Below are positions 3,726 to 63,741 of a stretch of 64,000 bases of DNA, piece by piece (position 1 is the first letter of the stretch; the number at the start of each line of letters is the position of its first letter). The position numbers and the translations under genes are program-made. The DNA lies in the IMG/VR virus record IMGVR_UViG_3300032331_003609, positions 1-64,000 of that record; one strand, given 5' to 3'. The notes below the pieces were generated by a model. That model saw nothing but the letters and a program-made list of their open reading frames with translations, had not been told where the DNA came from and made no database searches.

Positions 3726-3741
3726 TGAAATAATAAAAAGA

Positions 3742-26488: not shown

Positions 26489-26489
26489 T

Positions 26490-29962: not shown

Positions 29963-29965
29963 AAT

Positions 29966-30310: not shown

Positions 30311-30311
30311 A

Positions 30312-30686
30312 ATGAAAAAATTATCTTTCCTAATTCTAAGCTTAATAGTACTTAATAGTTGTACTAAGCATGATCTTCCTGAGCCAATTTCTCAGCAAAT
30401 GGATCCAAATCTTAAAATGTCTTCTTCTTTCGGAATTAAATTACAAAATTCTTTTGTTACGAGCGAGGTGTCTATGAATGTCAAAACCGAATCAGCACAG
30501 ACCGTAACTATTAAAATATATGATATTTCTAATAGAGTTGTTTCTAAGTCAACAAGTGAAGTTAAGTCTGGCGATAATCTTTTAAACGTATACACATCAG
30601 CTCTTCCATCTTCAGCATACAGAATCGCTCTTTATGATAGTAATAATAATCTATTAGGAATAACTGATTTTAATAAAATAAACTAG
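30312..30686 (+). CDS. lipoprotein, T9SS C-terminal sorting domain-like
   Basis: LNSC lipobox; VTIKIYDISNRVVS...LPSSAYRIALYD...F.K. Confidence 0.6.
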   Translation: MKKLSFLILSLIVLNSCTKHDLPEPISQQMDPNLKMSSSFGIKLQNSFVTSEVSMNVKTESAQTVTIKIYDISNRVVSKSTSEVKSGDNLLNVYTSALPSSAYRIALYDSNNNLLGITDFNKIN

Positions 30687-30731
30687 GAGTAGTATAATCT
30701 TTAAAAAATATTTGGTGAGGAAAAAAATCAG

Positions 30732-32258
30732 ATGAAGAAATTGTTGGTGTTATTTTTATTGGTGATAGCTTCAAAAGTAAATGGTCAGGTATTTACTCAA
30801 ACGTATGTTGATAAATGTACAGGAGAAATTAAACTGGTTGTATCTACTCCATTGCCAAATGGGGGTGTAATGATTGCTTTTTACAATCAGATAAAGACAT
30901 TTGATGTATCTCAGGTAAATAACGGAACTGTTCAAAAATGGTTAAACGATGTTTATCAAGACTATAGTACAAGACCATGCCCAGTAAGTACCGTTGTTAC
31001 ACAAACTGTTCAACAAACAGTTTCTCAAGCTGCAGCTGCGGCAGCAGCTTCAGCAGCAGCTTCAGCAGCTTCAGCAGCAGCTTCTTCTGCAGCAAGTGGT
31101 GCAGCATCATCTGCAGCAAGCTCAGCAGCTAGCGGAGCAGCTAGCGGAGCAGCATCATCTGCAGCATCGGGAGCAGCAAGTGGTGCGGCAAGCGGAGCAG
31201 CATCGGGAGCAGCAAGTGGTGCAGCAACAGGGGGTGCTAGTTCTCCGCCTCCTGCATCAAGTGGCGGATCATCTGGGGGTGGTTCTTCGTCAGGTGGTAG
31301 TTCTTCAGGGGGTAGTTCTTCATCTTCAGAAAGTAAAAGTAGTGGTGGATCTACGGAACAAAAATCCGAATCTAAGGCAGAAACTAAATCAGAATCAAAA
31401 TCGGAAAGTAAATCCGAAAGCAAAACCGAAGAAAAGAAAGAGGAAAGTAAATCTGAAACAAAAAAAGAAGAAAAAAAGGAGGAAAGCAAATCAGAAGAAA
31501 AAAAGAAAGAGGAAAGTAAGAAAGAAGAAGAGAAAAAGAAAGAAGAGGATAAGAAAAAAGAGGAAGAGAAAAAGAAAGAAGAAGAGAAAAAGAAAAAGCA
31601 ATCTATCAGTAATCCTACTTTAGTTGCTTCTGATGTTGCAATAACAGAAGCTAAAGATGGAAAATATGCCGCAATGATTTCTACTGGTATAAGCAAATCT
31701 TCTATGACAGGAACAGAAAGTTGGGGATTAACATCTATGATATGGACAACCTTCGATCAATTTGCTTTAAATGGTGGATATACTAAAATGAATTTTAAGC
31801 AGGGTAAATTAAAAGATATTGACTCATATTCAATTACTGCAGCATATTTGCAAGGAAATCTAATGATTATGCAGGGTTACACGTTTATTAAGCCTGATCC
31901 AAAAATAGGAACATATGGATATAATATAGGTGTCGTAAGTTTATTATTAAAAAATGGTAATAGTTATGATTATTCAGCATCTGTGTCTGCTATTGGATTC
32001 TGGACAAAGATTTATCCATTAAATAAGAAATCATCTTTGGCCCCTCAGGTTTTTATAACAAGTTCCCCAATTTCTTGGAATCCTTCAACCAATCAAACTC
32101 TTGTTAATAGACAGTATGGATTTATGACTGGATTCTCTTACGATTTTAAATTGACTGGAAGATTCGGTCTTAACTTCAATTATAAGTTTTCTGGATCTAC
32201 TCAACCAGAAACCCCAATATTGCACAATTTTATGATAGGATCGAGAATTATGCTATAA
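30732..32258 (+). CDS. exported protein with Ala/Ser/Gly and Glu/Lys low-complexity linker and C-terminal beta-barrel
   Basis: Signal peptide; AASSAASGA and KKEEEK repeats; amphipathic strands in the last ~210 aa. Confidence 0.7.
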   Translation: MKKLLVLFLLVIASKVNGQVFTQTYVDKCTGEIKLVVSTPLPNGGVMIAFYNQIKTFDVSQVNNGTVQKWLNDVYQDYSTRPCPVSTVVTQTVQQTVSQAAAAAAASAAASAASAAASSAASGAASSAASSAASGAASGAASSAASGAASGAASGAASGAASGAATGGASSPPPASSGGSSGGGSSSGGSSSGGSSSSSESKSSGGSTEQKSESKAETKSESKSESKSESKTEEKKEESKSETKKEEKKEESKSEEKKKEESKKEEEKKKEEDKKKEEEKKKEEEKKKKQSISNPTLVASDVAITEAKDGKYAAMISTGISKSSMTGTESWGLTSMIWTTFDQFALNGGYTKMNFKQGKLKDIDSYSITAAYLQGNLMIMQGYTFIKPDPKIGTYGYNIGVVSLLLKNGNSYDYSASVSAIGFWTKIYPLNKKSSLAPQVFITSSPISWNPSTNQTLVNRQYGFMTGFSYDFKLTGRFGLNFNYKFSGSTQPETPILHNFMIGSRIML

Positions 32259-47260: not shown

Positions 47261-48898
47261 ATGAGCAAGTTATCAGAATACGCAGTTAAATCCAAATCAG
47301 AAACTAGAAAATACGAGGACCTAGTGGTAGAGAATTTTATGGGGGGTAATTCCTATAAACTTTCTCCCTTGCAAACTCTTAAAATAGTGGCTGCTAGTTC
47401 TATCTTCGGTGAGCCTCAGTATTATAAGAATGGCATAAAATCTGAGGCATCTATCAAGAATCATGATACACTATTGGAATATTCTATATTTTCAGATCTT
47501 ATTAAGGATTCTACCTCTGCTGCAGATGTTTTTACGAACGCTATTGACTCATCCTTAGATTATGACTTCAAGGGAACTTTAGACTTAGCTACGGAGCTAA
47601 GAATGCTGTTTTTGATGAGGTTAAACCCTGCTGTCATTTTCATACGAGCTTCAATTCATTCAAAAAGAGCTGAATTCAATGAATCTAATCCAGGTTACAT
47701 GAAAACTGTCGGTAAATCGATAGCTCTTAGACCAGATGATCTGACAAATCAATTTGAGTATTTCATGTATGTGAATAAGACTAAAAACAAATTGAGCTCA
47801 ATCGTTAAAAGAACATGGGCAGAAAGACTTGGAGAATATTCAAAATATCAACTGAACAAATATAAAGGAAAGAGTCTAATTGATCTTGTTAGGATTTCAC
47901 ACGCTTGGAATAATAACATAGATGAGTTAATGAAGACCGGATCTATTAAGGTTGAGGAATCGGAAAGAACCTGGGAGAATTTAAAATCCAGCGGAAAGAA
48001 CTGGAAAGAAATCCTAGAGACTATCGAAATTCCGCACATGGCACTTTTAAGAAATCTAAGAGGTATTTTTAAAGAGATCGAAGATTTAGAAATTGCTAAA
48101 TCAGTCATGGAAAAATTATCTGCTGGTGTTTCTAAAGGAAATCAATTCCCTTTTAGATATTGGTCAGCATACAAAGCGGTAGAGAAAGAAGATGAGATCA
48201 ATCATAAAGGAATTATCTTAGATGGACTAGAATCTTGTATGGACATCTCAGTTTTAAATATGCCAAAGCTTGTTGGGAAAACCATATGCCTTTCTGATAA
48301 TTCAGGATCTTCTTGGGGACAATTGGCTTCCGAATACGGAAGTGTTCACGCAGCAGAGATAGCAAACCTTTCTTCCCTAATTACAGGTAAGCAGTCAGAC
48401 GAAGGTGAAATAGGATTATTCGGAGACAAACTTATCGTTGAATCAGTTTCTAAAAGAAACGGTTTACTTTCCCAATTAAAGGCAGTTAATGCGGTAGAAA
48501 GAGATGATAGTAGATTAGGTGGAAGTACAGAAAATGGTATTTGGATTTTCTTTGATCAAGCAATTAAAGAGAAAAAGCATTACGATAACATTTTCATATA
48601 TTCAGACATGCAAGCTGGGCATGGAGGTTTATATGGTAGCGACCCTAGCGAATATGAGGATTTCGTGCACAGCAAAGGAGGATGGAGATACATTGACGTT
48701 CTAGCTCTTGTTTCTAAATATAGAAAAGAGGTGAATCCGAAAGTTAATATTTTTTCAGTTCAGGTTGCAGGGTATGATAATACAGTATTACCAGAAAATA
48801 TTTATAGAGGAGCGATTTTAGCTGGATGGACAGGAAAAGAACCAGTTTTTGCTAAGGCATTAATCGATACCTGGAATGAAATAGAATCTACCAAATAG
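47261..48898 (+). CDS. rsr: Ro60 / TROVE-vWA RNA-binding protein
   Basis: NFMGGNSY, SIFGEPQYY, KYQLNKY, LIDLVRISHA, PHMALLRNLR, PFRYWSAY, and vWA SDNSGSS and IYSDMQ. Confidence 0.9.
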   Translation: MSKLSEYAVKSKSETRKYEDLVVENFMGGNSYKLSPLQTLKIVAASSIFGEPQYYKNGIKSEASIKNHDTLLEYSIFSDLIKDSTSAADVFTNAIDSSLDYDFKGTLDLATELRMLFLMRLNPAVIFIRASIHSKRAEFNESNPGYMKTVGKSIALRPDDLTNQFEYFMYVNKTKNKLSSIVKRTWAERLGEYSKYQLNKYKGKSLIDLVRISHAWNNNIDELMKTGSIKVEESERTWENLKSSGKNWKEILETIEIPHMALLRNLRGIFKEIEDLEIAKSVMEKLSAGVSKGNQFPFRYWSAYKAVEKEDEINHKGIILDGLESCMDISVLNMPKLVGKTICLSDNSGSSWGQLASEYGSVHAAEIANLSSLITGKQSDEGEIGLFGDKLIVESVSKRNGLLSQLKAVNAVERDDSRLGGSTENGIWIFFDQAIKEKKHYDNIFIYSDMQAGHGGLYGSDPSEYEDFVHSKGGWRYIDVLALVSKYRKEVNPKVNIFSVQVAGYDNTVLPENIYRGAILAGWTGKEPVFAKALIDTWNEIESTK

Positions 48899-52244: not shown

Positions 52245-53141
52245 ATGAAAGTAATTTGGGTCCTAGAAAATATTAAAAAGGGACATAAATTTTTTTTACC
52301 AGAAATAGAGCTTCTTGGATTAATTGCTTCTGTATCTAACTGGAAGATCCTGTATCCAAAAACATCCACCCATCTTTATTGCGATTCATCAGTTTTAGAA
52401 TATCTAGATAAAATAGAGATATCAGATCTTTGGGAAACAATACACACGAATGAATTAGATTCCCCGGATCTAATAGACAGAAACCCATTCTGGGCAGCTT
52501 CAAAAATTAAAGTCATAAAGGAAATAGAAGCTCCATTTATAATAATGGATTGCGATCTTTATTTCAAAGATCAATGTTTAGATCTTGATTCATTTTCAGA
52601 ATTTGATATAATTACAAACCAAATAGAGGATGGGATAGGATACTATCCTACAAAAAGGGATTCAGTTATAAAAGACATGATAGATCCATTCGGATACAAA
52701 TCAAGCCATGCATTCAATGTTGCATTTCTTTATATAGGAGATGAAAGGATCAGAAAAGAATATACAGATCTGGCATATTCCTGGATGGAGGATCTTTCTA
52801 TGAAGAACGAAGAATCTTTAAGTGGAAAGTATATGATTTTTTGTGAGCAAAAAATGCTAAAGGAATTTGCTGATCTTTATGATGCTAAAATAATATGTCT
52901 AGCAGATCATTCGATAAAAGGAGCTGAGGAAAAGATCCCTATAATAAATGGGTATAAAACATTGAATCTTAATGATTCTAATTATGTTCATTTGCATAGA
53001 CTAAAATCAAGGGTTAAATCAAATACAGGTTTGTTCCTTGATACCAGAAGTGATGTTATTAAATCAATTTATAATTTAGATAAACTGATGGCTAAGCGAT
53101 CTTTTTCTGCTCTTAAGCTTTCTAATGAGGATCTATTCTAA
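52245..53141 (+). CDS. glycosyltransferase-like protein (DUF6734-like)
   Basis: FWAASKIKVI...PFIIMDCDLY (DxD), FNVAFLYI, IFCEQKML, YVHL. Confidence 0.6.
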   Translation: MKVIWVLENIKKGHKFFLPEIELLGLIASVSNWKILYPKTSTHLYCDSSVLEYLDKIEISDLWETIHTNELDSPDLIDRNPFWAASKIKVIKEIEAPFIIMDCDLYFKDQCLDLDSFSEFDIITNQIEDGIGYYPTKRDSVIKDMIDPFGYKSSHAFNVAFLYIGDERIRKEYTDLAYSWMEDLSMKNEESLSGKYMIFCEQKMLKEFADLYDAKIICLADHSIKGAEEKIPIINGYKTLNLNDSNYVHLHRLKSRVKSNTGLFLDTRSDVIKSIYNLDKLMAKRSFSALKLSNEDLF

Positions 53142-53760
53142 CCTTTCTTTTGTCTGATATGATAAAATCATAAACTTTTTTATCATCCATTTCTACCCCA
53201 ATATAATCAAGCATTCTTTTTATCTCTTCTATATTATGATCTACATATAGATCTTCATAATAAAAAATTGGCCATGATTTTTCTTCGGCTATTAACTTCA
53301 TTCTTTCCGAGAAGTGTAAAAACGAATTTGTTTCCTTCTCTATTCTTACTTTATCTATTTTATCTATTTCGTATATCTTAGGGATATCCCATCCCATTTT
53401 AGAATCTGCATTTACTAAAAGACTTTCAGCCTGTAGTCTTTTGTCTCTCCTATCCAGAACTATAACTCTTTCAAAAAATCCATCCATCCAATTTATGAAT
53501 TCTATTTCTTCTAGCCCTAAAGATTTTACCGGATGTTGACTACATCCAAAAAGTGTTTTTATTAAGATCTTATCGAATTTTAAAAGAGGATTTATGTGAT
53601 CAAAATCAAATCCTTTTCTATAATAGTCCACATAATTTCTTGGGTTAAATGGCTCATAGAAGCATTCAAAGCCTTCTGAATAGAGTTGTGATTCTAGCAT
53701 CCTATATAAAGAAGTTGAGCCAGTTCTGGGTCTAGCCAGTATTGCTATTTTATTAAACAT
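53122..53760 (-). CDS. sulfotransferase-like protein
   Basis: ILARPRTGSTSL, YEPFN, LDRRD...AES, YYEDLY. Confidence 0.75.
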   Translation of the reverse strand: MFNKIAILARPRTGSTSLYRMLESQLYSEGFECFYEPFNPRNYVDYYRKGFDFDHINPLLKFDKILIKTLFGCSQHPVKSLGLEEIEFINWMDGFFERVIVLDRRDKRLQAESLLVNADSKMGWDIPKIYEIDKIDKVRIEKETNSFLHFSERMKLIAEEKSWPIFYYEDLYVDHNIEEIKRMLDYIGVEMDDKKVYDFIISDKRKVRIDPH

Positions 53761-54318
53761 TTATAATAATTTATTGACATCTTTATTTTTTCTAAGCCTT
53801 TGACCATACGGAAATTGTTTGTTTTCTAATTCTGGTATATTTAAATAATCCAGTATTCTTTCAAATCCGTTGTTATAATATAATTCTTCGTATGATATAT
53901 TAAAATAACCTTTATCTAAATAATTATCTTTTATTCCTAGTTTTATCTCGTTAAAATATGATGTATCAGCATCTTTGATCAGTTCTTCTTTAAATACCCA
54001 ATTTCTATCCCAATTATTTGTTTTATTAGCATTTAACCATGATTCGATTTGTTCTGTTGCATTCTCTCTATATAGTATAATCGTTTTATCACACACTGAT
54101 AATAATTCAGAAAAGTCTACTTCTGGGTAATATGTTTCTTTAATTAAAAGATGTTGTGTACTATATTCCCAAGATTTAGGGGATGTTCCGTTCTTAAACC
54201 ATTCTTTATCGGAACTAGTTATTGGTTCGAATAGTGTTGTAAATTTTTTATTAAAATAAAACCAATTTGCTAAATTTGTTGAACCACTTCTTGGCTCTGC
54301 TAAGATTGTGATTATCAT
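53761..54318 (-). CDS. sulfotransferase-like protein
   Basis: ILAEPRSGSTNL, FEP, LYREN..EQIES, SYEELY. Confidence 0.75.
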   Translation of the reverse strand: MIITILAEPRSGSTNLANWFYFNKKFTTLFEPITSSDKEWFKNGTSPKSWEYSTQHLLIKETYYPEVDFSELLSVCDKTIILYRENATEQIESWLNANKTNNWDRNWVFKEELIKDADTSYFNEIKLGIKDNYLDKGYFNISYEELYYNNGFERILDYLNIPELENKQFPYGQRLRKNKDVNKLL

Positions 54319-54320
54319 GT

Positions 54321-54762
54321 TTAAATTATTTTATTTATAATTTTAGATTTAATTAACGTATATCTTTCAATATCAAACATCTCAGGTTTAAAATCTAAAT
54401 ATTCCTTCCATTGCCATTGGTGACCTGTTATGTTATAAGAGCTATTCATATAAAAATTATAAAGCTCGTCACAATAGACTGGTTCGGGTAATTTTCCGCC
54501 TACCCTTTTATTTGTTTAATTAATCCGGTAGAGTTGTTATAGACAATAACAATGTGAGATTTATTTAAATCCGGTGTTGCTTCTCTTAGTTCTATTAATG
54601 TGTCTTCATAATTACATCGGCCACAATTACCCATTCTTGCAATCATTTCGATAGAATAATGCTTTTCTAAATCAACCCAATAATATCCAATAAGATAGAG
54701 CCTATTTTATTTCCAACGATACTATCAATTATTTTTAATTGATGTGATCGAGATGATGCCAT
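54321..54762 (-). pseudogene. frameshifted gene (or homopolymer assembly error)
   Basis: Three consecutive reading segments join by -1 shifts in A4 runs (54705-54708, 54506-54509) into a 147-aa ORF that begins TAATG-coupled and ends ...KIINKII like its neighbours. Confidence 0.5.
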
Positions 54763-54902
54763 TAATTCAAGTGTTTATCTTTTATAGCATTCACAAAAGC
54801 TTGAAATGCAGTAGCAACCTTTGCTTTTAAATCTGCAGATACCGGTGTTACCGTTGTCTTAATTATTTGTAAGGGTCTTTCTATTCTTTCTTTCTTTGCC
54901 AT
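54762..54902 (-). CDS. small hypothetical protein (46 aa)
   Basis: Translated by hand: MAKKERIERPLQIIKTTVTPVSADLKAKVATAFQAFVNAIKDKHLN. Confidence 0.65.
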   Translation of the reverse strand: MAKKERIERPLQIIKTTVTPVSADLKAKVATAFQAFVNAIKDKHLN

Positions 54903-54932
54903 ATTTTTTATTTTATATTTTTATTAAAACTA

Positions 54933-56435
54933 TTAAGGCTCAAATTTTTGGTTACCACCCCATCTACATGTTGGACACCATGTTTCATAACACCAGTTTC
55001 CGCAATACGTAGAACTACACCAGCATGTTGGATTGTGCATTATACTGTATAGTCCTTCTCCGATATCAACTAAGAATAAATCGGAAGGTTCAAAATCTAA
55101 ACCATAGATTGTTTTGATTGCATATTCCATTTCTAATCCGGTAATTGCTACTGTTGTCAATTCGTTTGTCTCGGAATCTGTTATTACTAATTTATCCCCG
55201 ATGTAAAAATTGTTTACATTTTCAAATCTTGTTTCGGTTGATCCTAATTCTTCAATAAAATATTTACAGCTTGGTGTATCTACCCAAGAAAGTCCATTTT
55301 CTAACGTGATTCTAATATGTATGGTGTCAACTTGTGCTGAAACAATTTCTTGTAAAGATGTGCTTAATTTTGTTAAAGTAGCATTTGCTTGGGCTAAATC
55401 GCAATCCCATCCATAGGTTTGCAAATTCTCTAGATTTGGGGTACCCCCAAGATTCCCATTTAAATCCGTGAATTGTATGGATCTCATATAATCACCTATT
55501 TGAATCGTACTTAAATCCGCTAAAGTTCCGTCATATTTTAAAATTTTGCTATCTTCTTCTAAGTGATAATTCACAAGACCAAATTTTCCTAAGGCCTTTG
55601 TAATGTATTTATATCTGCTCTTCTGCTTAAATTCTCTAGATCCATCTTTAAATTCATTCTGTGAAAATGAAACAGGAAGAACAGCAGATTGCTTATAGCA
55701 GCCCATGTTGATAATATCAATTTCTGAACCATATAGAATATCTATACTCCTGATAACACTATATTTTCCTTCTTCCAGATTCTGAACATCATATACAAAT
55801 TCTTGTAGCATGTTATTTTCCGGAAGATTAAGATTTGATTTCATTGCTCCAAATTCGGTTTCATTCTGGATAGAATAAATCGCGGGAAGTTGCATTGGAT
55901 CATATTGAGGATATCTGTGTTTTTTAATGAGATTTGGTTCATCCACGTTTGAATAGTCAAGAACATCTAATGTATCCAAAGATAATTCTCCTCCAAAGTA
56001 TGTTTTAGGTATAAATTCAGACCCTTCCATTAACTTAAAAAACTCAAATTTGTCTGCACAGTATGTTTCGTCTATTAGTGCTGTTGTATCAAAAGATTGT
56101 CTAAGAATGAATTTATGGTCAGCATCTTCTATATAAGGAACAGTAACGGAATTAGCGCTAACAATATGCGGAATATATGTTATTTCATTCTCCTCACATT
56201 TTTCCTTCAATATTTCCTCAAATCTGTGGGGGAAATTGAGAGGTAGAAATGCTTCGGTATCTGTGTATATGTAATGAAATTCTGTGATGTTATTCAGAAC
56301 CAGCATAGAGAATAAGGGCGCATAATCTAATAAATCTGCACCATTATTATAAATAGTTGTGTTTGTGTTAATCTCTAGAATTTTTACATCTTCCCCTGTT
56401 TGTAATAAATCGCTACCAATTATAGTTGCTTTCAT
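54933..56435 (-). CDS. circularly permuted ATP-grasp-like domain + Hint domain + Cys/Trp-rich C-terminal peptide
   Basis: N-terminal GSDLL...ILEINTN (ATP-grasp D..E.N), then LIKK and MLQEF; Hint-like LEEDSKILKYDG..IQIGDYMRS ... IYGLDFEPSDLFLV...IMHN; then PTCWCSSTYCGNWCYETWCPTCRWGGNQKFEP. Confidence 0.7.
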   Translation of the reverse strand: MKATIIGSDLLQTGEDVKILEINTNTTIYNNGADLLDYAPLFSMLVLNNITEFHYIYTDTEAFLPLNFPHRFEEILKEKCEENEITYIPHIVSANSVTVPYIEDADHKFILRQSFDTTALIDETYCADKFEFFKLMEGSEFIPKTYFGGELSLDTLDVLDYSNVDEPNLIKKHRYPQYDPMQLPAIYSIQNETEFGAMKSNLNLPENNMLQEFVYDVQNLEEGKYSVIRSIDILYGSEIDIINMGCYKQSAVLPVSFSQNEFKDGSREFKQKSRYKYITKALGKFGLVNYHLEEDSKILKYDGTLADLSTIQIGDYMRSIQFTDLNGNLGGTPNLENLQTYGWDCDLAQANATLTKLSTSLQEIVSAQVDTIHIRITLENGLSWVDTPSCKYFIEELGSTETRFENVNNFYIGDKLVITDSETNELTTVAITGLEMEYAIKTIYGLDFEPSDLFLVDIGEGLYSIMHNPTCWCSSTYCGNWCYETWCPTCRWGGNQKFEP

Positions 56436-56467
56436 ATTTTTTTATCTATTTATATTATATATCTGTC

Positions 56468-56773
56468 TTATAAAATCGTCCTAAAATCCTTTATTTTTAT
56501 AATTTTACCATATTTAGCATCGACTTCTTTCCATTTGCCCTTTGGACATGGTTCAGATTCCATACTAAATATCTTCCTATTTATGGGACATCCACAGCTT
56601 CCACAAATTGCTGACCATGATTTTTTTTTAAGTATTTCAGTGTAATGTTCACACCCCGAATTATCTGCATCTCCCTGACATATTAGCAACCTTTCCTGTG
56701 AGTTTGCCCTTTCGATCTCTGTTGGGTTTTTAGACCTTTTCCAAGCATTGAATATCTCTATAAAATTTATCAT
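56468..56773 (-). CDS. small Cys-rich (Zn/Fe-S) protein
   Basis: RLLIC...GCEH...ICGSCGC...K...CPKGKW. Confidence 0.7.
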   Translation of the reverse strand: MINFIEIFNAWKRSKNPTEIERANSQERLLICQGDADNSGCEHYTEILKKKSWSAICGSCGCPINRKIFSMESEPCPKGKWKEVDAKYGKIIKIKDFRTIL

Positions 56774-57498
56774 ATTAATGTTCTATTAGATTTGACGATG
56801 TCATACCTATCATAGATAGAATTATAGCGCGTGATGAATTCGTCATCTAGTTTTAGATTACATTCGAAATGTTGGCTTCCGTTTGATTTTTCCATTTTAA
56901 AAGGCTTACCAATTTTATTAGATACCCATTTTTCTAATTCGTCAAATTTTCCAAATTCGAACCAAGTTATATTAGGGTCGTTGTTGTGCCAATATGAAGT
57001 TGGTCTAAATATAATTTCGAACATATTTCCTAAATATGTATCATATTTTTCATCCATCCCAATTTTTTTTATGAATTCACTGACTGTATTACGTAATGCT
57101 TCTGTAGTAAAAATATCGGTATCTTTATAAAATAGAATATCATTTACGTTTAATTTTTGTAATATAGTACTATATTTTTCCCCATGCTCAAAGTGTATCA
57201 TGTCAATTAAATGCTTCCAGACTGAAATGAATCGTTCATGTCTATTTCTCCTTATTGCAATTATTTCATATTGATCTCCAAAGTGTCTTTTTAGATTTAA
57301 TATACCCTCATGCAGATGAAGCATGATGTCTGCAAGATATTCATTATCCAATTTTAAATCGATGTTAGCATTGTGCTTATCTATGATCTTTTGTTCGCCA
57401 TGCTTTACGTCCAATTCACTACGCAAACAAGATATGTAAAAAGAAGTAGATGCACATCTAGGTAAACTAATAAATAAAAAATTGTTTTCTATTAACAT
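56770..57498 (-). CDS. sulfotransferase-like protein (Sulfotransfer_2 type)
   Basis: FISLPRCASTSF, HLH, IRRNRHERFISVW. Confidence 0.7.
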   Translation of the reverse strand: MLIENNFLFISLPRCASTSFYISCLRSELDVKHGEQKIIDKHNANIDLKLDNEYLADIMLHLHEGILNLKRHFGDQYEIIAIRRNRHERFISVWKHLIDMIHFEHGEKYSTILQKLNVNDILFYKDTDIFTTEALRNTVSEFIKKIGMDEKYDTYLGNMFEIIFRPTSYWHNNDPNITWFEFGKFDELEKWVSNKIGKPFKMEKSNGSQHFECNLKLDDEFITRYNSIYDRYDIVKSNRTLI

Positions 57499-58722
57499 CT
57501 ATATTAAAGATTTTTGTTTTTGTTTGATTCCTTTATTTATTATGTCGTAGGAGAATTTACCAAATGTAATACTAGCTTCATCTGCAAATATATCGGCTAG
57601 ATCTTTTTTTGGTTTAAAATTATACGAAGAATCTATTATTAAATCTAAAGGATGTGGCAAATCCCCTGCTAAATCATTCACTTTTTTCCAAAAATTGGTA
57701 TCTGTTCTATTTGTCAAATAATGATAATAAATAAAAATCATATTTTGTGTATTGATAGAATTAACAAATTTATTATATTTTTCTAAAGTAATTTTTTTGG
57801 AAATAACCTCATTGAATACTTCTAGTTGTAAAATTACAGTCATTATTGAAGTGGCCTCTAATGGCTCTAAAAATCCGGTGCTTAATCCTATTGCCAAGCA
57901 ATTTTCAATCCATACATTTTCGTATGATCCTGGTTTAAATTTAATTTGTCTATTAAATTCAACAGAATGTCCTACCCATTCTATTATTTCTTTTTTGGCA
58001 TCATCTTCAGTAATTTCAGTTGAGTCAAATATGTAGCCACACCCCATTCTTGTCTGGAGTGGTATCTGCCACATCCATCCATGTTTCATAGCGATAGATT
58101 TGGTTGTTGTTTTTATGTCAGTAATCTTGTTTGGTAAAAAAAACGGAATTGCGGTATTTACTTTTAAATGAGATTCGTACGAAATCCAATTTGATTTATA
58201 ATGATTACCGATTAATAATCTTTTAAAACCGGAGCAATCAATAACAAATGATGCATCAATCGTTGAATCTGTTGTCTTAAGCCCAATAATTCTGTTTTCG
58301 TCACTTGCTACTGTTTCGGTTACAATACCTTCGATCCAATTAACCCCCCGTTCGATCGATAAGGATTTAAGGTATTTTGCTAATAATCTAGCATTAAAAT
58401 GGTACGCATATCCTTGGCCTTTTACTTTATAATCAATCGGATGATGATACGCAAGATTAGGCTCTGTCCAATTTTCAAAATCAATACCTGTTTTAAATGT
58501 TGCCTCGCAATTTTTGATCATATCATCAGATGTGATCCCTAGCTCATTTAAAAATTTTACAATATTACCAGTAGTTCCTTCACCCGCACCCAATATTCCG
58601 ATCTCATCACTTTCGATTAATGTTATTTTTGAATTTTTAAATTTACTATTTAAATACAACGCTGACAACCATCCTGCTGTACCCCCGCCAACTATAACAA
58701 TATTATCTAAATTATATTTCAT
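57499..58722 (-). CDS. tryptophan halogenase-like flavin-dependent enzyme (PrnA family)
   Basis: GGGTAGW, GAGEGT, ATFKTGIDF, YHFNA, IDCSGF, GWMWQIPL, GLSTGFLEPLEATSI. Confidence 0.9.
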   Translation of the reverse strand: MKYNLDNIVIVGGGTAGWLSALYLNSKFKNSKITLIESDEIGILGAGEGTTGNIVKFLNELGITSDDMIKNCEATFKTGIDFENWTEPNLAYHHPIDYKVKGQGYAYHFNARLLAKYLKSLSIERGVNWIEGIVTETVASDENRIIGLKTTDSTIDASFVIDCSGFKRLLIGNHYKSNWISYESHLKVNTAIPFFLPNKITDIKTTTKSIAMKHGWMWQIPLQTRMGCGYIFDSTEITEDDAKKEIIEWVGHSVEFNRQIKFKPGSYENVWIENCLAIGLSTGFLEPLEATSIMTVILQLEVFNEVISKKITLEKYNKFVNSINTQNMIFIYYHYLTNRTDTNFWKKVNDLAGDLPHPLDLIIDSSYNFKPKKDLADIFADEASITFGKFSYDIINKGIKQKQKSLI

Positions 58723-58723
58723 A

Positions 58724-59368
58724 CTATATTAACGATTTTTGTTTTTTGATAAATTCAAATCCAACATTTCCAGCTAAAACCATCCTATCCTTTGTTGAAT
58801 CCAGCGCGTGCTGTGGAGAGTGAGGTAGATCTGATTTCATTATTATAAAATCCCCTTCTTTTGGTAATATAAAATATTCGCAATCATCTTCACCTTTAAT
58901 ATACAAAGTGCCATCATCATCTTTTAAATTGTCAGGCATTTGAATATAATATATCCACGTAAAATGAGGTATAAATGTATTTCTTTTTTGATTTATTTCT
59001 GTATGTATGTGGTATTGGCGTAATTCGCTTTCGATATTATAGAATTGTACAGGATTTTTAGCTCTAACTACGTTTACCCAGCAATCTGTACTTATTTTAT
59101 TAAATGGTAAATTATACTCCATTTCGAAGATCTTAATGCATGATTGGATTCCAAAAATTAAAATTTCGTCTAATTTATTTTCAATCTTAATTTCTCCAAC
59201 AAAATTTAAATCATTACTTTCCTCGAAATAACCATAGCCATCTTGTGTGACATTAGGTAAGCCTTCAATAATTTCGTTGCACTTTTTTAAAATGTCATTT
59301 TTAAAATCCAGGAGATTTAATACATCTTTATATAAATACGTGATCCTATCATAGATTATCTTTTCCAT
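58724..59368 (-). CDS. putative 2OG-Fe(II) oxygenase
   Basis: YHIH, WIYYIQMP, GTLYI, PKEGDFIIMKSDLPHSP, RMVLAGN. Confidence 0.7.
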   Translation of the reverse strand: MEKIIYDRITYLYKDVLNLLDFKNDILKKCNEIIEGLPNVTQDGYGYFEESNDLNFVGEIKIENKLDEILIFGIQSCIKIFEMEYNLPFNKISTDCWVNVVRAKNPVQFYNIESELRQYHIHTEINQKRNTFIPHFTWIYYIQMPDNLKDDDGTLYIKGEDDCEYFILPKEGDFIIMKSDLPHSPQHALDSTKDRMVLAGNVGFEFIKKQKSLI

Positions 59369-59373
59369 AAAAA

Positions 59374-59838
59374 TTAAATAATAGATTTGGTTGTATGTGG
59401 TTCTAAAACATTATTTACATTAATTTTTAAATAATATTTTGTACCACTGAGAATTTTATTATTTCCGCATTTAATGTTAGGAAAAAAAGTTATCATATCT
59501 CCTGGTAGATTATTCATATGTAAATTTTTATTAGTTTCCTCATTTAGAAATATAAAATTCCCTCCCTTAAAATCTGAATTTAATACTAGCAATAATGTAA
59601 GATCATACCCGGGTTGGCTTAAAAAAACAGGTTCAGTATTTTCTGTAGATATGCTGTAAAATTTTATATCATTTATAGACATACCGCTCCCGTTGTATTT
59701 CATCTTATTCAAATGCTCTTTTAATTTTTGAGCCAAGAAATCATTGCTGGTGGATAATTCATTTTTAAAATCATACAAAAGACTATTACATTCCTCAGAT
59801 GATATAAAATTTTTTAAACATGTAACTCGTTTTTCCAT
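59374..59838 (-). CDS. degenerate 2OG-Fe(II) oxygenase-fold protein
   Basis: LTLLLVLNSDFKGGNFIF...PGDMITF...GTKY; the metal-ligand His residues appear absent. Confidence 0.65.
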   Translation of the reverse strand: MEKRVTCLKNFISSEECNSLLYDFKNELSTSNDFLAQKLKEHLNKMKYNGSGMSINDIKFYSISTENTEPVFLSQPGYDLTLLLVLNSDFKGGNFIFLNEETNKNLHMNNLPGDMITFFPNIKCGNNKILSGTKYYLKINVNNVLEPHTTKSII

Positions 59839-60401
59839 TATATTAAGTTCTGTTTACCTAATTTTGTTTTAACTAACCCGATCCAATTTACCAAAGAATA
59901 TCGCACACCTTTTTGAATAGGGGTTACTCTATGTACCAATCTTGAATTAAACACATATAATGTTCCAATTTTGTTTTCTATTGTTACATGTTCTCCTTTA
60001 ATATTTTTAATCTCTAATATACCCCCCGTATACATTTCGTTTAGTTGAATTACTATTGACATAAACCTGTCTTTATATACTAAATCCGTGCTATCTGTGT
60101 GCCAATCAAAGTATTCCCCCTCTTTATATTCGGTAAATTGATATTGCCCCAATTTGGTAGCTTCCATACCGTTTATATCGAGAGAGTTCCTTAATTTGCT
60201 TGTTAATCTTTTATTTAAAAATCCCAAATCAGATATCCAACCAACCGACGATTTTCTGTTTATTTTATTAAGGGGTTTTTTAGCTGTCTCACCATATACA
60301 GTGGCAGGTGATAAAATTAATTCTTCCTTGCATTTATTTAAAATGAAATCACATTCTTCTTTAGAAAGAAAATTTTTGAAAATACCGATATAATCGTTCA
60401 T
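59838..60401 (-). CDS. 2OG-Fe(II) oxygenase (PKHD type)
   Basis: QFTEY..GEYFDWHTD, SIVIQLN..YTGG, HRVTPIQKGVRYSLVNW. Confidence 0.9.
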   Translation of the reverse strand: MNDYIGIFKNFLSKEECDFILNKCKEELILSPATVYGETAKKPLNKINRKSSVGWISDLGFLNKRLTSKLRNSLDINGMEATKLGQYQFTEYKEGEYFDWHTDSTDLVYKDRFMSIVIQLNEMYTGGILEIKNIKGEHVTIENKIGTLYVFNSRLVHRVTPIQKGVRYSLVNWIGLVKTKLGKQNLI

Positions 60402-60415
60402 TATTGAATGTAATT

Positions 60416-60748
60416 TTATGTGATATTTCTAATTATTATTGTTAGAGATATGCAAATCCATATGGTATTAAAAGCAACTAATGTTGGCAGATTTTTTTTC
60501 ATAGAAGCCCATATCAAAAGAGAAGAAGTGAGAAGTGTTAAAAAGTGCATATACCAAAGTTCTATTCCAAAAACTAATCCGGGTATAATGATCATGGCCT
60601 TTGTAAGCCACGCTGCAAACTCTATTGTATTATAATCCGTCCAGTAATTCTTATCAAGAAACATTTTATACCTATCAAGTATCTTCCCCCACCCTATTAT
60701 GTAATAGAGTAATATATTAAAAGCAGCAAAGACCAGCACGTATTTCAT
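60416..60748 (-). CDS. multi-TM membrane protein
   Basis: About four hydrophobic segments. Confidence 0.7.
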   Translation of the reverse strand: MKYVLVFAAFNILLYYIIGWGKILDRYKMFLDKNYWTDYNTIEFAAWLTKAMIIIPGLVFGIELWYMHFLTLLTSSLLIWASMKKNLPTLVAFNTIWICISLTIIIRNIT

Positions 60749-60772
60749 TTTTAAACGATATTTAATTATATC

Positions 60773-61252
60773 CTATATTAGGGTTTTTTCTTTCTTTTCT
60801 ATTCCTATATAGAATGAAATTAAACTAAATCTACTTCCCCTGATAACATTTAAAACCCGATGCTTTATTTTTTTATGCAGCATTATGCTATAATTCATTT
60901 GAGGCGTTATTTTTATTTTTTGATTCTTAAAAATATACTCAAATTCACCGCCATCAAAATCTTCATTAATATATGTAACAATGGTTAAATCTGCTTTATC
61001 GTTATGAAAATCGTCATTAATATTTGTTTTATCGGTTACCTTGTTAATCCATAAGCCGCTTAACTCGTAGCCGTTTGGTAAATATTTTGAGCATTTTTCC
61101 TGATATTCTAGCAGATCTTTTTCCGCGTTTAATATTTTTCTAACGTAGTAATTATTTCCATCAGGTACCTGGGTTTCTACAAAATCCGAGCATATCAAAC
61201 CTAAAAAAAGCAGATCCTTCTCTGACAACAGATTTTGGTGTGTGTTAATCAT
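60773..61252 (-). CDS. 2OG-Fe(II) oxygenase
   Basis: FHND, IVTYINEDFDGGEF, HRVLNVIRGSRFSLISF. Confidence 0.85.
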   Translation of the reverse strand: MINTHQNLLSEKDLLFLGLICSDFVETQVPDGNNYYVRKILNAEKDLLEYQEKCSKYLPNGYELSGLWINKVTDKTNINDDFHNDKADLTIVTYINEDFDGGEFEYIFKNQKIKITPQMNYSIMLHKKIKHRVLNVIRGSRFSLISFYIGIEKKEKTLI

Positions 61253-61264
61253 AACAGCTTTTTA

Positions 61265-61474
61265 CTATTTCTTAAGTCCGTACTTAATCCATCTATACCA
61301 AATTCTCTCATGTAAGTAATATTGAATTGGTTTATAGATTAATTCTGCTACCCCAAATGCTGCTCCTACTTTAATGGAACCGCTTATTAACCACATTAAT
61401 AAGAATCCAATCACCGTACTTACTATGCGATATGAGATTGTTTTTGCTATATGTCTTTTTCTTTCTACTATCAT
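61265..61474 (-). CDS. DUF2061-like small membrane protein
   Basis: RHIAKTISYRIVST...YYLHERIW. Confidence 0.75.
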   Translation of the reverse strand: MIVERKRHIAKTISYRIVSTVIGFLLMWLISGSIKVGAAFGVAELIYKPIQYYLHERIWYRWIKYGLKK

Positions 61475-61851
61475 TATCCTTTTGTTTCGTCATAGGTAAT
61501 AGATCCGTCTGGTGTCATATGTCCGGTTCTGATTGCAGTTCCGCTTATCGCCGCAACATCTACTGGTGGTTCATGGTAGATCACGTCATATCCAACCCCA
61601 CGTCCGTAGTTTACACTCTCAATGTCAGGAATTACCGAAATTAGAAGTCTCCCTGTTTGTATGTAATCATTTAAAGCAACCTTTAGTTCGTCAAAAACTT
61701 GTTGGGAAGATTTAGGATTGTTCTCATCCTGCGGGACATCCCTGATTGCAACCCAAACGTTTTTTCCCTGGCTGAATTGTTGGTCTATTAACCACTGATG
61801 GCCTTTATGCCAGTTCTGCCATCTCCCGATATAAAGTGAGTATTTTTTCAT
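61474..61851 (-). CDS. HIGH-superfamily nucleotidyltransferase (NadM/cytidylyltransferase-like)
   Basis: YIGRWQNWHKGH and ISGTAIR motifs. Confidence 0.8.
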   Translation of the reverse strand: MKKYSLYIGRWQNWHKGHQWLIDQQFSQGKNVWVAIRDVPQDENNPKSSQQVFDELKVALNDYIQTGRLLISVIPDIESVNYGRGVGYDVIYHEPPVDVAAISGTAIRTGHMTPDGSITYDETKG

Positions 61852-62285
61852 ATAGATTCTAGATTTAGAAGTGAGATAAGTTCCTCGAGGGATTCTTCAG
61901 GATTATCCCCATTTGTGAAAGTTTTATGATTGCTTACAGGGAATTCAAATGTTCCTACGTGGAATTTTTCTTTCCCCGAGAAATGTGGCCGATTGAAAAG
62001 AACTTCTATCACCTCATTATTCGCTTTTAGATCCTCCCTAATTGCACGATAAGGACAAACCATACTTATCACTACATCATGTCCCTTTTGGCTCATAAAG
62101 CGAGCTATAGTGAACGATTTTTCGATGTTTCTGATCCTTCCAGAGTATGAATAATCGGTATTTGGGAAGATCTCTCTTAGATCATCTCCATCTATCCAAA
62201 TAGTGCTATTCCCAAGTTTTTTTACCAGCCTGCTAGCCATCTCGGTCTTTCCCGTTCCTGGCTGTCCGATGAATAAATAAATCAT
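61848..62285 (-). CDS. cysC: adenylyl-sulfate (APS) kinase
   Basis: GQPGTGKT, IDGDDLRE, DYSYSGRIRNI, VISMVCPY. Confidence 0.8.
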   Translation of the reverse strand: MIYLFIGQPGTGKTEMASRLVKKLGNSTIWIDGDDLREIFPNTDYSYSGRIRNIEKSFTIARFMSQKGHDVVISMVCPYRAIREDLKANNEVIEVLFNRPHFSGKEKFHVGTFEFPVSNHKTFTNGDNPEESLEELISLLNLESI

Positions 62286-62296
62286 ATGCTTAAAAT

Positions 62297-62413
62297 TTAA
62301 TGGTTATATGTAAATGGATCTCTTTTTCTAATTTCTTCTATTTTTTTTAGAAATTCTTTCTTTTTTTTCCTTTTTTGGAAGTAATTTTTAATCCAGTTGA
62401 TTAGTTTTCTCAT
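62297..62413 (-). CDS. small basic peptide (38 aa)
   Basis: MRKLINWIKNYFQKRKKKKEFLKKIEEIRKRDPFTYNH; first gene of the minus-strand operon. Confidence 0.55.
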   Translation of the reverse strand: MRKLINWIKNYFQKRKKKKEFLKKIEEIRKRDPFTYNH

Positions 62414-62514
62414 TGCATTTATTATATTAATTATATATTTTAAGTTTCCCACCCTATATGGCATATTATTTCGGAATTTTATTGCATTTTGCTCTAAAAT
62501 ATTAAAATATAAAT

Positions 62515-63741
62515 ATGGTCTGGAATTACAAAGACACATTGCTAGTTCACGTTGAGCTTTCTAATATGTGTAATGCTGCTTGTCCGCTTTGTCCAAGATA
62601 CGTGAATAACTCATTAAGAGTCAATCCCGAGCTTGATTTGGGTAGTGTTTCATTAGAAGATTTTAAAAAATGGTTCCCCTTAGATTTTGTTCAGAAAAGT
62701 AAAAGCTGGATATTTTGCGGAACCAATGGTGATCCTATAATGGCAAGGGATGTTTACGAAATACTGGAATATGTACTTCGCAATTCGGAAGCGAAGGTTC
62801 AGGTAAACACTAACGGATCCATCAGAGATGGGGAATTTTGGGAAAAAATGGGAGCATTATTTGCAGAACCCTGTGTCAATAGTAGATACGTTGTTTTTTC
62901 AGTCGATGGATTGGAAGACACAAATCACATCTATAGAAGAAACGTCAAATGGGATAGGGTGATGGAAAATATGGGAGCATATTCCAAATCGGGTTCTACC
63001 GGAATTTGGGATTTTTTAATATTTAAACACAACGAACATCAGTTAGATGAGGCAGAGGCACTTTGTAAAAAAATAGGATTAGCGTTTTCTCCAAAAAGAC
63101 CTTTCGGGTTTGAGACAGGAAACCCAGATGAATATCAGGATCTAATGGTTTATGATTTAGATGGCAATTTTTTATACAGGATAGAACCTGCTAGCGAAGA
63201 GTGGAGATTAAACAGATCCCTCAATAAATTTCAAAAAGGGGAAGAAAAAATATGGGTTCCCGGGAAGGAGAAAAAAAGTAAGGATCAGACAGAAGAAAAA
63301 TGGAACGGATTAATAGAAAGAGATCTTCCTAAATATCAATTTCCAGAAAGATTCAAGGGAAAATCTGTTAGCTGTAAATCATGCCATCCTATAGGAAAGG
63401 AAATATACGTTGACTGTAAGGGTAATGTTATGCCTTGCTGTTTTGTAGGAACAATGTACAATAGTGATTTTCAACACCACGAAGCATTGCAGATCAAAAA
63501 GCACTTACAAGATTGGGGGTTAGATAAAATAAATTTAAACAACCATTCTCTTGAAGAAATATTAGACAGCAAGTATTTAGACGATGTATTTGCAAATAGA
63601 TGGGATGGTGCTAAAAAGGATGAGGATAAAATGGGATATTGTTTCAATACATGTTCGGTTGATCATATGAAAGACCTTTTCGTTAGAAAGGAGGAATTAC
63701 CTATATCCCCGGAAAAACACGAGATAAAAAGTCTTATATAG
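62515..63741 (+). CDS. radical SAM protein with SPASM/twitch domain
   Basis: CNAACPLC (CxxxCxxC), GTNGDP, SVDGL; C-terminal C...IYVDCKGNVMPCC...CFNTC. Confidence 0.9.
   Translation: MVWNYKDTLLVHVELSNMCNAACPLCPRYVNNSLRVNPELDLGSVSLEDFKKWFPLDFVQKSKSWIFCGTNGDPIMARDVYEILEYVLRNSEAKVQVNTNGSIRDGEFWEKMGALFAEPCVNSRYVVFSVDGLEDTNHIYRRNVKWDRVMENMGAYSKSGSTGIWDFLIFKHNEHQLDEAEALCKKIGLAFSPKRPFGFETGNPDEYQDLMVYDLDGNFLYRIEPASEEWRLNRSLNKFQKGEEKIWVPGKEKKSKDQTEEKWNGLIERDLPKYQFPERFKGKSVSCKSCHPIGKEIYVDCKGNVMPCCFVGTMYNSDFQHHEALQIKKHLQDWGLDKINLNNHSLEEILDSKYLDDVFANRWDGAKKDEDKMGYCFNTCSVDHMKDLFVRKEELPISPEKHEIKSLI

Follow-up and report, generated by a model that had tools for sequence, protein, structure and literature searches.

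A shared C-terminal tail on tailoring enzymes around a candidate ATP-grasp-Hint peptide precursor in uncultured T4-like phages

The window analysed here, a 64-kb stretch of DNA (64,000 nucleotides), is the first part of the IMG/VR virus record IMGVR_UViG_3300032331_003609 and contains, at 53122-63741, a dense island of genes for tailoring enzymes. Our analysis shows that most of these enzymes end in the same short tail, K/R-x-L-[IL]-COOH (hereafter the tag), a feature absent from the original prediction for this DNA. The tagged enzymes surround a protein of 500 amino acids (aa) that is itself never tagged and that combines an ATP-grasp-like domain, a Hint domain and a small Cys-rich C-terminal piece (54933-56435, minus strand). 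We regard it as close to certain that the tag is a functional protein motif, and as very probable that the island forms one functional system, which is widespread among uncultured T4-like phages. From the sequences we propose a pathway resembling those of ribosomally synthesized and post-translationally modified peptides (RiPPs), in which the Hint domain would release a peptide, tagged enzymes would be recruited to modify it, and the phage would supply its own activated sulfate (3'-phosphoadenosine 5'-phosphosulfate, PAPS); for this pathway as a whole the scales stand level.

In the window the tagged tailoring enzymes of the minus strand end in RTLI, KSLI, KSLI, KSII, QNLI, KTLI and RTIL, the radical S-adenosylmethionine (SAM) enzyme on the plus strand ends in KSLI, and two proteins encoded past the window end in KSLI and RSLI. 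Within the phage's own genome record, two terminal aliphatic residues ([LI][LI]) are found in 13 of 21 open reading frames (ORFs) of the island and in 12 of 245 ORFs elsewhere (Fisher p = 2e-10). Related loci were gathered via the radical SAM protein (3), via exact look-ups of homologues of the 500-aa protein (2) and, for a further 80, from IMG/VR via alignment of the 500-aa protein; 84 loci were analysed, in which ORFs of at least 50 aa were counted and grouped into families by BLAST clustering. Among these loci 721 of the 1509 ORFs lying within 10 kb of the Hint gene (48%) share the [LI][LI] ending, and the consensus tail is K-K-x-K-K-[TS]-L-I.

Possession of the tag is bimodal by family. 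In at least 12 unrelated enzyme families 85-100% of the members are tagged: 2-oxoglutarate (2OG) oxygenases (168 members), two sulfotransferase-like families (85 and 73), the Cys-rich protein (79), 2OG-like proteins (69), DUF6071/SGNH-like proteins (67), halogenases (51), a 414-aa family (21), radical SAM enzymes (17), DUF6734-like proteins (15), another 2OG family (13) and several smaller ones. The tag is universal in the 85-member sulfotransferase-like family (that of 56770-57498) and in the halogenases, and it reaches 91% in the Cys-rich family and 86% in the family of 58724-59368. At the other extreme it is found in none of the 500-aa proteins (84), nucleotidyltransferases (43), DUF2061 proteins (40) and APS kinases (33), nor in the carbamoyltransferases, and GT25 proteins are likewise untagged. 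The 26 loci with complete 10-kb flanks each hold 8-14 tagged ORFs, which concentrate between -6 and +4 kb of the 500-aa gene. Between -4 and -2 kb, 88-95% of the ORFs are tagged, and 2 kb downstream the share is 76%; beyond 6 kb on either side it drops to 7-17%.

Three lines of evidence identify the tag as a motif of the protein. Its codons are mixed (Ser at position -3 is written with TCN and AGT, Thr with all ACN, Leu with TTR and CTN), the information content of the DNA falls to background right after the stop codon, and tagging is independent of translational coupling: the kinase, nucleotidyltransferase and DUF2061 genes are coupled to their neighbours and never tagged, and the Cys-rich gene, where a gap follows it, is tagged nonetheless in 60 of 65 cases. 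On the same grounds of codon usage, post-stop DNA and coupling, two other origins of the tag were rejected, one as a side effect of the translation start of the following gene and the other as a recombination site. A reading as a clamp-binding or DNA-modification signal was also dropped, position -4 being Lys rather than Leu and the system being centred on a peptide-bearing protein. A search for a PDZ_2 domain as a potential reader of the tag gave no match in the 245-kb record.

The tag also tends to go with the 500-aa gene. A 105-kb fragment of a related phage encodes an orthologue of the radical SAM enzyme (73% identical) that ends just before the start of the tag; no homologue of the 500-aa protein was found in the fragment, and its tail frequency is at background (6 of 128 ORFs). 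Since the fragment is just 32% complete, we take this control as supportive rather than conclusive. The homologous enzyme arrays of Pelagibacter phage HTVC008M, Prochlorococcus phage P-SSM2 and Synechococcus phage Sf-CH11 are without the tag.

The 500-aa protein has no match in Pfam or PHROG, and its AlphaFold2 (AF2) model (predicted local distance difference test, pLDDT, 78) comprises two domains. Among 38 homologues Pfam likewise returned nothing significant, with RimK in 3 of 38 at E of at least 0.1. The family is large: more than 561 homologues were found in metagenomes at 90% clustering, a profile search of 1.84 billion representatives yielded 400 clusters at 50% identity, and members occur in at least 256 stretches of IMG/VR. 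No relative was detected by tblastn in 50,697 deposited phage records or by a pattern-limited scan of GTDB genomes. Residue conservation was assessed on 125 representatives of the clusters at 50% identity.

Residues 291-468 adopt a Hint fold, and the Hint fusion of the original prediction is thereby confirmed by structure. VIA gives Z scores of 15.2 to Tetrahymena BIL2 (6tmm), 15.0 to the NpuDnaB intein and 14.2 to hedgehog (1at0), and Foldseek matches the domain at E 6e-8 with template modelling (TM) scores by target of 0.74-0.80. In the VIA alignment residue 291 coincides with residue 1 of inteins and residue 468 with their last residue. Position 291 is a nearly invariant His; the Cys or Ser nucleophile of position 1 is missing, and therefore no thioester, splicing or N-terminal cleavage is expected. 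The other end of the domain is intact, with H467 conserved in 94% and N468 in 97% of the representatives, placing a His-Asn pair at the exact domain end; the +1 residue following it varies (S, G, T, A, P, N, Q). Inteins use the terminal His-Asn pair to cleave at their C-terminal end, through cyclisation of the Asn. The phage Hint domain would accordingly cut only at this end, in the same manner, and would free a piece of about 30 residues. Such self-cleavage is somewhat to be favoured.

Residues 1-283 resemble ATP-grasp ligases of the class of glutathionylspermidine synthetase, YgiC and glutathione synthetase. The VIA match is moderate (Z 9.8 to YgiC, 7uka; 9.2 to GspS, 2io7; 9.0 to 3k1t; 7.6 to Cp1B, 9cjn), is consistent across many family members and is weaker to TTLL, RimK and LysX. 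D9, E21, N23, T24, D104, R112, D122, K172 and R229 are conserved in 87-100% of the representatives, and E21, N23, R112, D122, K172 and R229 in 98-100%. Activity of Cp1B depends on an E-x-N pair (E163/N165), needed for formation of the acyl phosphate, and on an Arg/Asp pair placed around the nucleotide (PMC12568646); the invariant E21-x-N23 parallels E163/N165. YgiC and YjfC are peptidyl-polyamine synthetases (PMC12568646). The conservation pattern points to an active site under selection.

The piece that follows the His-Asn pair (residues 469-500, pLDDT below 50) has a shared framework in close homologues and is hypervariable in deeper relatives. In 166 of 179 unique close homologues it carries the framework CxC-x4-C-x3-C-x4-C-x2-C, filled in as C-W-C-P-W-N-Y-C-G-x-[WY]-C-x-S-x-[YW]-C-P-x-C, behind which come 4-12 (usually 7-12) variable residues with an end that is usually K-[LIV]. 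More widely, 114 of 124 full-length representatives retain His-Asn at the domain end and 84 of these 114 have at least four Cys within the next 70 residues, with scarcely any other conservation; fewer than 10 residues follow His-Asn in 4 of the 124. In at least 18 representatives the first Hint is joined by one or two more of canonical type (position-1 Cys, TxxH block, terminal VHN), placed straight after His-Asn or behind the Cys-rich piece, and several have the piece between two Hints. A Cys-rich piece between a C-terminally cleaving and an N-terminally cleaving Hint has the layout of an excised insert, which strengthens the reading of the piece as a released product. Some relatives (in P0122-P0270) have two or three canonical Hints in tandem after the first, each ending in VHN followed by 1-4 residues (K, KK, KKF).

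The original prediction also held that the cluster contains a candidate substrate. That is plausible, and the candidate core peptide is more likely the post-Hint piece, some 30 residues long, than the Cys-rich protein of 101 aa, itself one of the tagged proteins. The features of the window are as follows (Cys/Trp/Tyr-rich refers to the composition of residues 469-500).

52245-53141, plus strand: DUF6734 protein, conserved left flank of a variable cassette (Pfam E 4.7e-10; conserved in the related loci L005 and L006)
53122-53760, minus strand: sulfotransferase-like protein, 212 aa, untagged (ends IDPH); Pfam Sulfotransfer_3 E 1.8e-4, N-terminal part only
53761-54318, minus strand: sulfotransferase-like protein, 185 aa, tag variant NKLL; PRSGST P-loop; one BLAST family with 53122-53760
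54762-54902, minus strand: conserved 46-aa ORF directly after the 500-aa gene; no Pfam match
54933-56435, minus strand: 500-aa ATP-grasp-like and Hint protein with Cys-rich C-terminal piece, precursor-like, never tagged (AF2, VIA, Foldseek)
55587-56435, minus strand: its ATP-grasp fold, residues 1-283 (VIA)
55032-55565, minus strand: its Hint domain, residues 291-468 (VIA, Foldseek)
54936-55031, minus strand: its Cys/Trp/Tyr-rich piece, residues 469-500, candidate released core peptide
56468-56773, minus strand: Cys-rich protein, 101 aa, tagged RTIL; six invariant Cys
56770-57498, minus strand: sulfotransferase-like protein, 242 aa, tagged RTLI; invariant LPRxxST P-loop
57499-58722, minus strand: flavin-dependent Trp-halogenase-like protein, 407 aa, tagged KSLI (Pfam Trp_halogenase E 7e-97)
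58724-59368, minus strand: 2OG oxygenase-like protein, 214 aa, tagged KSLI (PHROG 2OG family, 1.2e-7)
59374-59838, minus strand: 2OG-fold relative, 154 aa, tagged KSII (BLAST grouping; no Pfam match)
59838-60401, minus strand: 2OG-Fe(II) oxygenase of prolyl-hydroxylase type, PF13640, 187 aa, tagged QNLI (Pfam 2OG-FeII_Oxy_3 E 4e-14)
60416-60748, minus strand: hydrophobic protein, 110 aa, untagged (ends RNIT), no Pfam match; 45% of its 11-member family are tagged
60773-61252, minus strand: 2OG oxygenase-like protein, 159 aa, tagged KTLI (PHROG 2OG family, 5.7e-8)
61265-61474, minus strand: DUF2061 small membrane protein, never tagged (Pfam E 7e-17)
61474-61851, minus strand: minimal nucleotidyltransferase of cytidylyltransferase fold, 125 aa, never tagged; HxGH and ISGTxIR motifs
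61848-62285, minus strand: APS-kinase-like P-loop kinase, 145 aa, never tagged (Pfam APS_kinase, 40.8 bits)
62297-62539, minus strand: small ORF in the divergent intergenic region, conserved in its C-terminal 38 or so aa alone
62515-63741, plus strand: radical SAM/SPASM enzyme, 408 aa, tagged KSLI, first gene of the plus-strand unit
2304-2894, plus strand: distant tagged sulfotransferase-like gene (KAKIL), BLAST family of 53761-54318

The gene block is present much as first described, in both ORF layout and family assignments. The minus strand has 18-19 ORFs across 53122-62539, most of which abut or overlap by 1-4 nucleotides; the radical SAM gene at 62515-63741 diverges from them, and the predicted divergent transcription from a radical SAM/SPASM gene is borne out by the layout and by both Pfam domains. 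The predicted right-hand limit of 63741 proved too narrow, as the system runs on in the plus-strand unit beyond the window to about 69.8 kb of the genome. In this right-hand unit are two NAD-dependent epimerase/dehydratases, the one fused to a 2OG domain being tagged KKII. On the strand map of genome positions 63770-74677 (L008:1770-12677) a plus-strand gene for an 831-aa protein without known family comes first, followed on that strand by the epimerase-2OG fusion, the second epimerase and a tagged 300-aa protein; the minus strand of this segment encodes two twitch-type radical SAM proteins and a GT7-like glycosyltransferase.

Family assignment of the tailoring enzymes is firmest for the halogenase (57499-58722). 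Its description as PrnA-like stands, with Pfam PF04820 and all catalytic motifs present: GxGxxG (G12-G17), K77, WxWxIP (W216-P221) and FxEPxE (F284-E289); the closest match, at 39% identity, is in HTVC008M. For the four genes assigned to the 2OG-oxygenase fold, three hold the iron triad and the Arg (H101-x-D...H157...R in 59838-60401, H83-x-D...H131...R in 60773-61252 and H122-x-E...H...R in 58724-59368), the latter two proteins falling below the Pfam cut-offs and matching PHROG 2OG families at 6e-8 and 1e-7, respectively. The fourth, 59374-59838, is placed with a 2OG family by BLAST; its HxD...H iron ligands are missing, and this 154-aa protein is therefore probably inactive. The radical SAM protein contains CxxxCxxC and scores above the cut-offs for PF04055 (39.6 bits, E 8e-10) and for SPASM, PF13186 (23.6 bits). 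Curated NCBIfam models of peptide maturases (sactipeptide, SCIFF, mycofactocin and others) gave it 15-48 bits against cut-offs of 170-650.

The three genes called sulfotransferases are less secure. Their sequence match to known families is confined to the PAPS P-loop (N-termini of NodH and CurM), which is invariant in these families; Pfam reaches 22 bits against a cut-off of 27 in one protein and finds nothing in the other two, and profile searches of the families against PDB sequences returned the P-loop as the sole match. Feature and structure neighbours in the Atlas are Sulfotransfer_1/2/3 for 56770-57498 and Sulfotransfer_3, Stf0 and NodH for 53761-54318. Standing on P-loop and Atlas neighbours, the assignment is a lead, not proof.

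Three small genes complete the picture. The 101-aa Cys-rich protein precedes the 500-aa gene in 78 of the 84 loci; its AF2 model (pLDDT 73) predicts two helices and a zinc-ribbon-like hairpin, and no PDB match with Z of at least 5 was obtained. At the position of the 46-aa ORF, 81 of 83 loci have an ORF of 37-50 aa with the pattern ERP...IK...KHL and without Cys, tag or family match. The small ORF at 62297-62539 is 66% identical to a 40-aa ORF of L006 and has the conserved end RDPFTYNH; judged by this conservation, the true gene may be about 40 aa long.

Three untagged genes, for the kinase, the nucleotidyltransferase and the DUF2061 protein, form the conserved right edge of the variable cassette. 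Between this trio and the DUF6734 gene (52245-53141) the enzyme content varies, even where the flanking proteins are 80-90% identical. The kinase exceeds the Pfam cut-off for PF01583 (21.1 bits); the NCBIfam models for adenylyl-sulfate kinase match at E 4e-14, with 53 and 42 bits against cut-offs of 127 and 139, the protein being short at 145 aa. The nucleotidyltransferase is cytidylyltransferase/NMNAT-like with weak Pfam and NCBIfam matches and is not a canonical ATP sulfurylase domain. Fusions of APS_kinase with CTP_transf_like in viruses and methanogens are among its structural neighbours, a lead only. The claim that the island contains its own cofactor supply is plausible. The role of the nucleotidyltransferase as a sulfate adenylyltransferase, and with it the supply of PAPS, we infer, since the domain is noncanonical.

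That the genes are more than chance neighbours was borne out by co-occurrence. Around the Hint gene in the 26 loci with full flanks the same families recur: 2OG oxygenases in 26, the sulfotransferase-like families in 26 and 25, the Cys-rich protein in 24, the nucleotidyltransferase in 23, and the APS kinase and the halogenase in 21 each. Three deep relatives of the 500-aa protein could be viewed in context. They are flanked by 2OG oxygenases, a halogenase and B12-binding and SPASM radical SAM proteins, and also by a SET-domain protein or methyltransferases, and most of the enzymes end in K-x-L-[ILF]. As tagged enzymes surround all three, the pairing of precursor and tagged enzymes is old and has been kept while the enzyme repertoire turned over.

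We therefore propose a RiPP-like pathway, because the near-invariant W, Y, P, N, S and C of the Cys-rich piece are residues on which enzymes of the classes found here usually act. Halogenases act on aromatic rings, PF13640-type oxygenases on Pro, Asn, Asp or Lys side chains, sulfotransferases on hydroxyl groups, and radical SAM/SPASM enzymes form Cys or aromatic cross-links. The tag would be a common address that draws unrelated enzymes, via its short basic linker, to one hub, and the tagged enzymes would be recruited in this way to the 500-aa precursor and would modify its C-terminal piece. Tailoring would fall to the halogenase and three to four 2OG oxygenases, together with the sulfotransferase-like proteins, the radical SAM/SPASM enzyme and the 101-aa protein with its zinc-ribbon-like hairpin, and the untagged module of kinase, nucleotidyltransferase and DUF2061 protein would supply PAPS. 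The split between tagged and untagged genes fits this model, since tagged enzymes must meet the substrate and supply genes need not. That the peptide is the substrate falls, in our estimate, a little short of an even chance. The likeliest hub would be the ATP-grasp-like domain of the precursor, because it belongs to the always-present untagged protein, its fold class binds and activates terminal carboxylates and it is otherwise without a role; that this domain reads the tag is nevertheless a tentative suggestion. In its fullest form, the tag-bearing tails would be bound or ATP-dependently ligated by the substrate-borne ATP-grasp domain, and the Hint domain would free a hypervariable, knotted and possibly cyclised peptide, a version that we hold to be possible but doubtful.

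Several observations weigh against this pathway. A minority of precursors has just 5-7 residues after His-Asn, and L005, with five, still has tagged neighbours. Presence of the halogenase shows no association with the number of Trp residues in the peptide. The small sulfotransferase-like proteins are closest to carbohydrate sulfotransferases (NodH, Stf0), and sugar-nucleotide epimerases and glycosyltransferases, some of them tagged, adjoin the system in several lineages, so that a glycan could be a target. The ligase on the precursor, apparently active by its conserved residues, has no assigned role in the model, the noncanonical nucleotidyltransferase counts against the PAPS supply step, and the Pro that follows the Asn in this phage may slow cyclisation.

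Part of the evidence would also fit if the tag is a signal for stability or timing that is read by a host machine, such as one of the ClpX type, with the enzymes acting elsewhere and the ligase-Hint protein being a separate co-travelling effector. C-terminal signals of the ClpX type, as in MuA, consist of basic residues followed by hydrophobic ones, and the phage tail is just such a basic run with two aliphatic residues at the extreme C-terminus. The tagged neighbours of L005-type precursors without a Cys-rich piece, and the few tagged genes at a distance from the island (2304-2894; 92860-93489 in genome positions), fit this view too. A general degron would not, however, be expected to follow one gene so closely. 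The tag is confined to enzymes beside the precursor and is missing from the cofactor-supply genes of the same operon, from the homologous arrays of cultured phages that infect various hosts and from the radical SAM orthologue of the fragment in which no precursor was found, and we consider a stability signal unlikely.

The sugar-related genes invite another explanation, in which the target of the island is a glycan or glycoconjugate, for example a polysaccharide of the host surface or a virion protein that bears sugars; the sulfotransferases would be carbohydrate sulfotransferases, and the tag would assemble a multi-enzyme complex. It would account for the conserved right-hand unit with its two epimerase/dehydratases, GT7-like glycosyltransferase and twitch radical SAM proteins, for the GT25, GT4/GT9 and carbamoyltransferase genes beside the system in relatives, and for NodH and Stf0 as Atlas neighbours of the small sulfotransferase-like proteins. 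It leaves unexplained why a ligase-Hint protein with a hypervariable Cys-rich end is the invariant partner of the tagged enzymes; enzymes of Trp-halogenase and prolyl-hydroxylase type, moreover, speak for peptide or aromatic chemistry, and the GT25 and carbamoyltransferase proteins are untagged. A glycan as the target of the island is decidedly unlikely in our view. A loose set of independent auxiliary genes in a hyperplastic T4-like region, without a common substrate, would agree with the different gene content between conserved flanks in close relatives (L005 and L006 versus the window) and with similar enzyme arrays in cyanophages and a pelagiphage (PMC2938197). A protein-level tag on unrelated families, tied to one precursor gene over some 400 clusters, disfavours this explanation to the point of making it highly improbable. 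The original prediction had offered a pathway for a modified peptide or the decoration of virion proteins; the peptide pathway is favoured here, virion decoration is without specific support, and a sugar target, suggested by the adjoining glycan genes, and a tag read by a host protease are serious if less probable rivals.

The record that holds the window is 244,850 bp long, with a completeness estimate by CheckV of 86%, and encodes a T4-type major capsid protein (gp23). No psbA was found in it, and the record therefore gives no sign of a cyanophage. Nucleotide comparison with the 50,697 deposited phage records revealed no similarity in near or distant modes. The public sequencing runs that contain the region are DNA metagenomes only, one of them labelled freshwater sediment. 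The content of guanine and cytosine is mostly 30-36% in the window and rises to 42-45% at 1-4000, where the tagged sulfotransferase-like gene 2304-2894 is located. At 24312-32258 (plus strand) six to seven successive proteins begin with signal peptides common in Bacteroidota (MKKLL...FAQ, or lipoprotein-like with Cys), a run that may point to the host group; three of its proteins were tested against PHROGs without a match. A 545-aa protein at 47261-48898 (plus strand) matches a PHROG annotated as RNA-binding protein (E 4e-40), the only match among ten flanking proteins compared with PHROGs. The protein at 17228-18907 (plus strand) is a homologue of NodU/CmcH-type carbamoyltransferases, and its homologues in L010 and L012 (47-50% identity) directly adjoin the kinase end of the system.

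With regard to expression, the T4 late-promoter motif TATAAATA was found 14 times against 13.6 expected and lies upstream of the 500-aa gene in just 22 of 80 loci; occurring at chance frequency and in so few loci, it was not used. Scans for sigma-70 promoters and terminators gave chance level only. Unlike its abutting neighbours, the 500-aa gene has an AT-rich gap of 30-100 nucleotides in front of it, at 56436-56467 in the window and at the same position in L010-L035, and within this gap a ATATTTAT-like box, conserved in many loci, is situated about 25-32 nucleotides before the start codon of the gene.

That aquatic phages carry arrays of oxygenases and halogenases has been known since 2010, with the substrate missing; here a candidate substrate gene is central and a tag links the enzymes, and a few recombinant proteins would suffice to test the substrate question. 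If the fullest form of the proposal is true, enzymes of any family could join it by gaining a C-terminal K-x-L-I tail, a natural plug-and-play system for combinatorial peptide modification that reverses the leader-peptide and recognition-domain rule of known RiPPs, and the peptide might be used in an arms race against hosts or competitors. The ligase-Hint-peptide architecture would add a self-releasing type of precursor to ribosomal peptide biosynthesis. The tag, if an address, would provide a simple rule to find all enzymes of such pathways in metagenomes and could serve as a portable handle for engineered peptide modification. In the literature searched we found neither the tag nor a fusion of ATP-grasp and Hint domains described. 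The general kind of system, phage oxygenase and halogenase arrays, is already known, and its recruitment logic here stands a real chance of being new.

Iyer et al. (2010) described ten tandem dioxygenases and two halogenases in Syn9 with peptide modification as the predicted function, and bacterial neighbourhoods that combine hydroxylases, sulfotransferases and PAPS synthetases (PMC2938197). The arrays of cyanophages and pelagiphages (Syn9, P-SSM2, HTVC008M) share with the present system the enzyme superfamilies, the T4-like phage background and the idea of several unrelated oxygenases acting on one substrate, but they have neither the C-terminal tag nor a ligase-Hint precursor, and no substrate gene has been identified for them. 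With GspS, YgiC/YjfC and Cp1B (PMC12568646) the 500-aa protein has in common the fold over about 205 residues, and its conserved E-x-N and Arg/Asp/Lys set resembles the residues that Cp1B needs to form the acyl phosphate; it differs in the lack of a sequence-level match, in the shorter domain (about 283 residues) and in the fusion to Hint. The resemblance to BIL, pretoxin-HINT and BUBL proteins (6tmm, 6y75, 2lwy) lies in the fold (Z 14.8-15.2), the terminal His-Asn and a variable C-terminal cargo, and in the longer relatives the Cys-rich piece stands between two Hints like the ubiquitin-like domain of BUBL; in contrast to BIL and pretoxin-HINT proteins, position 1 is a His, and the place of a toxin domain is taken by a cargo peptide some 30 residues long.

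In RiPPs such as the Cys-rich SCIFF/ranthipeptides, which radical SAM/SPASM enzymes mature, and those with large leaders derived from enzymes (NHLP/Nif11), a recognition domain of the enzyme binds the leader of the precursor, which a separate protease removes. A hypervariable, C-terminal Cys-rich core (in the phage a candidate one) on a larger precursor with a conserved N-terminal part and co-located enzymes, including a radical SAM/SPASM protein, are common to both, whereas the phage system has a four-residue tag on the enzymes, a 468-residue 'leader' of two domains with an apparently active ligase and, as proposed, release by its own Hint. Cone-snail peptides are short and hypervariable with fixed Cys frameworks, are cut from a conserved pro-region and become hydroxylated, Trp-halogenated and sulfated. 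By analogy, not homology, the phage system would have such a layout and the same trio of modifications as implied by its enzymes; the enzymes and organisms are unrelated, and the work that the secretory pathway houses in cone snails would here be done by phage enzymes in the cytoplasm.

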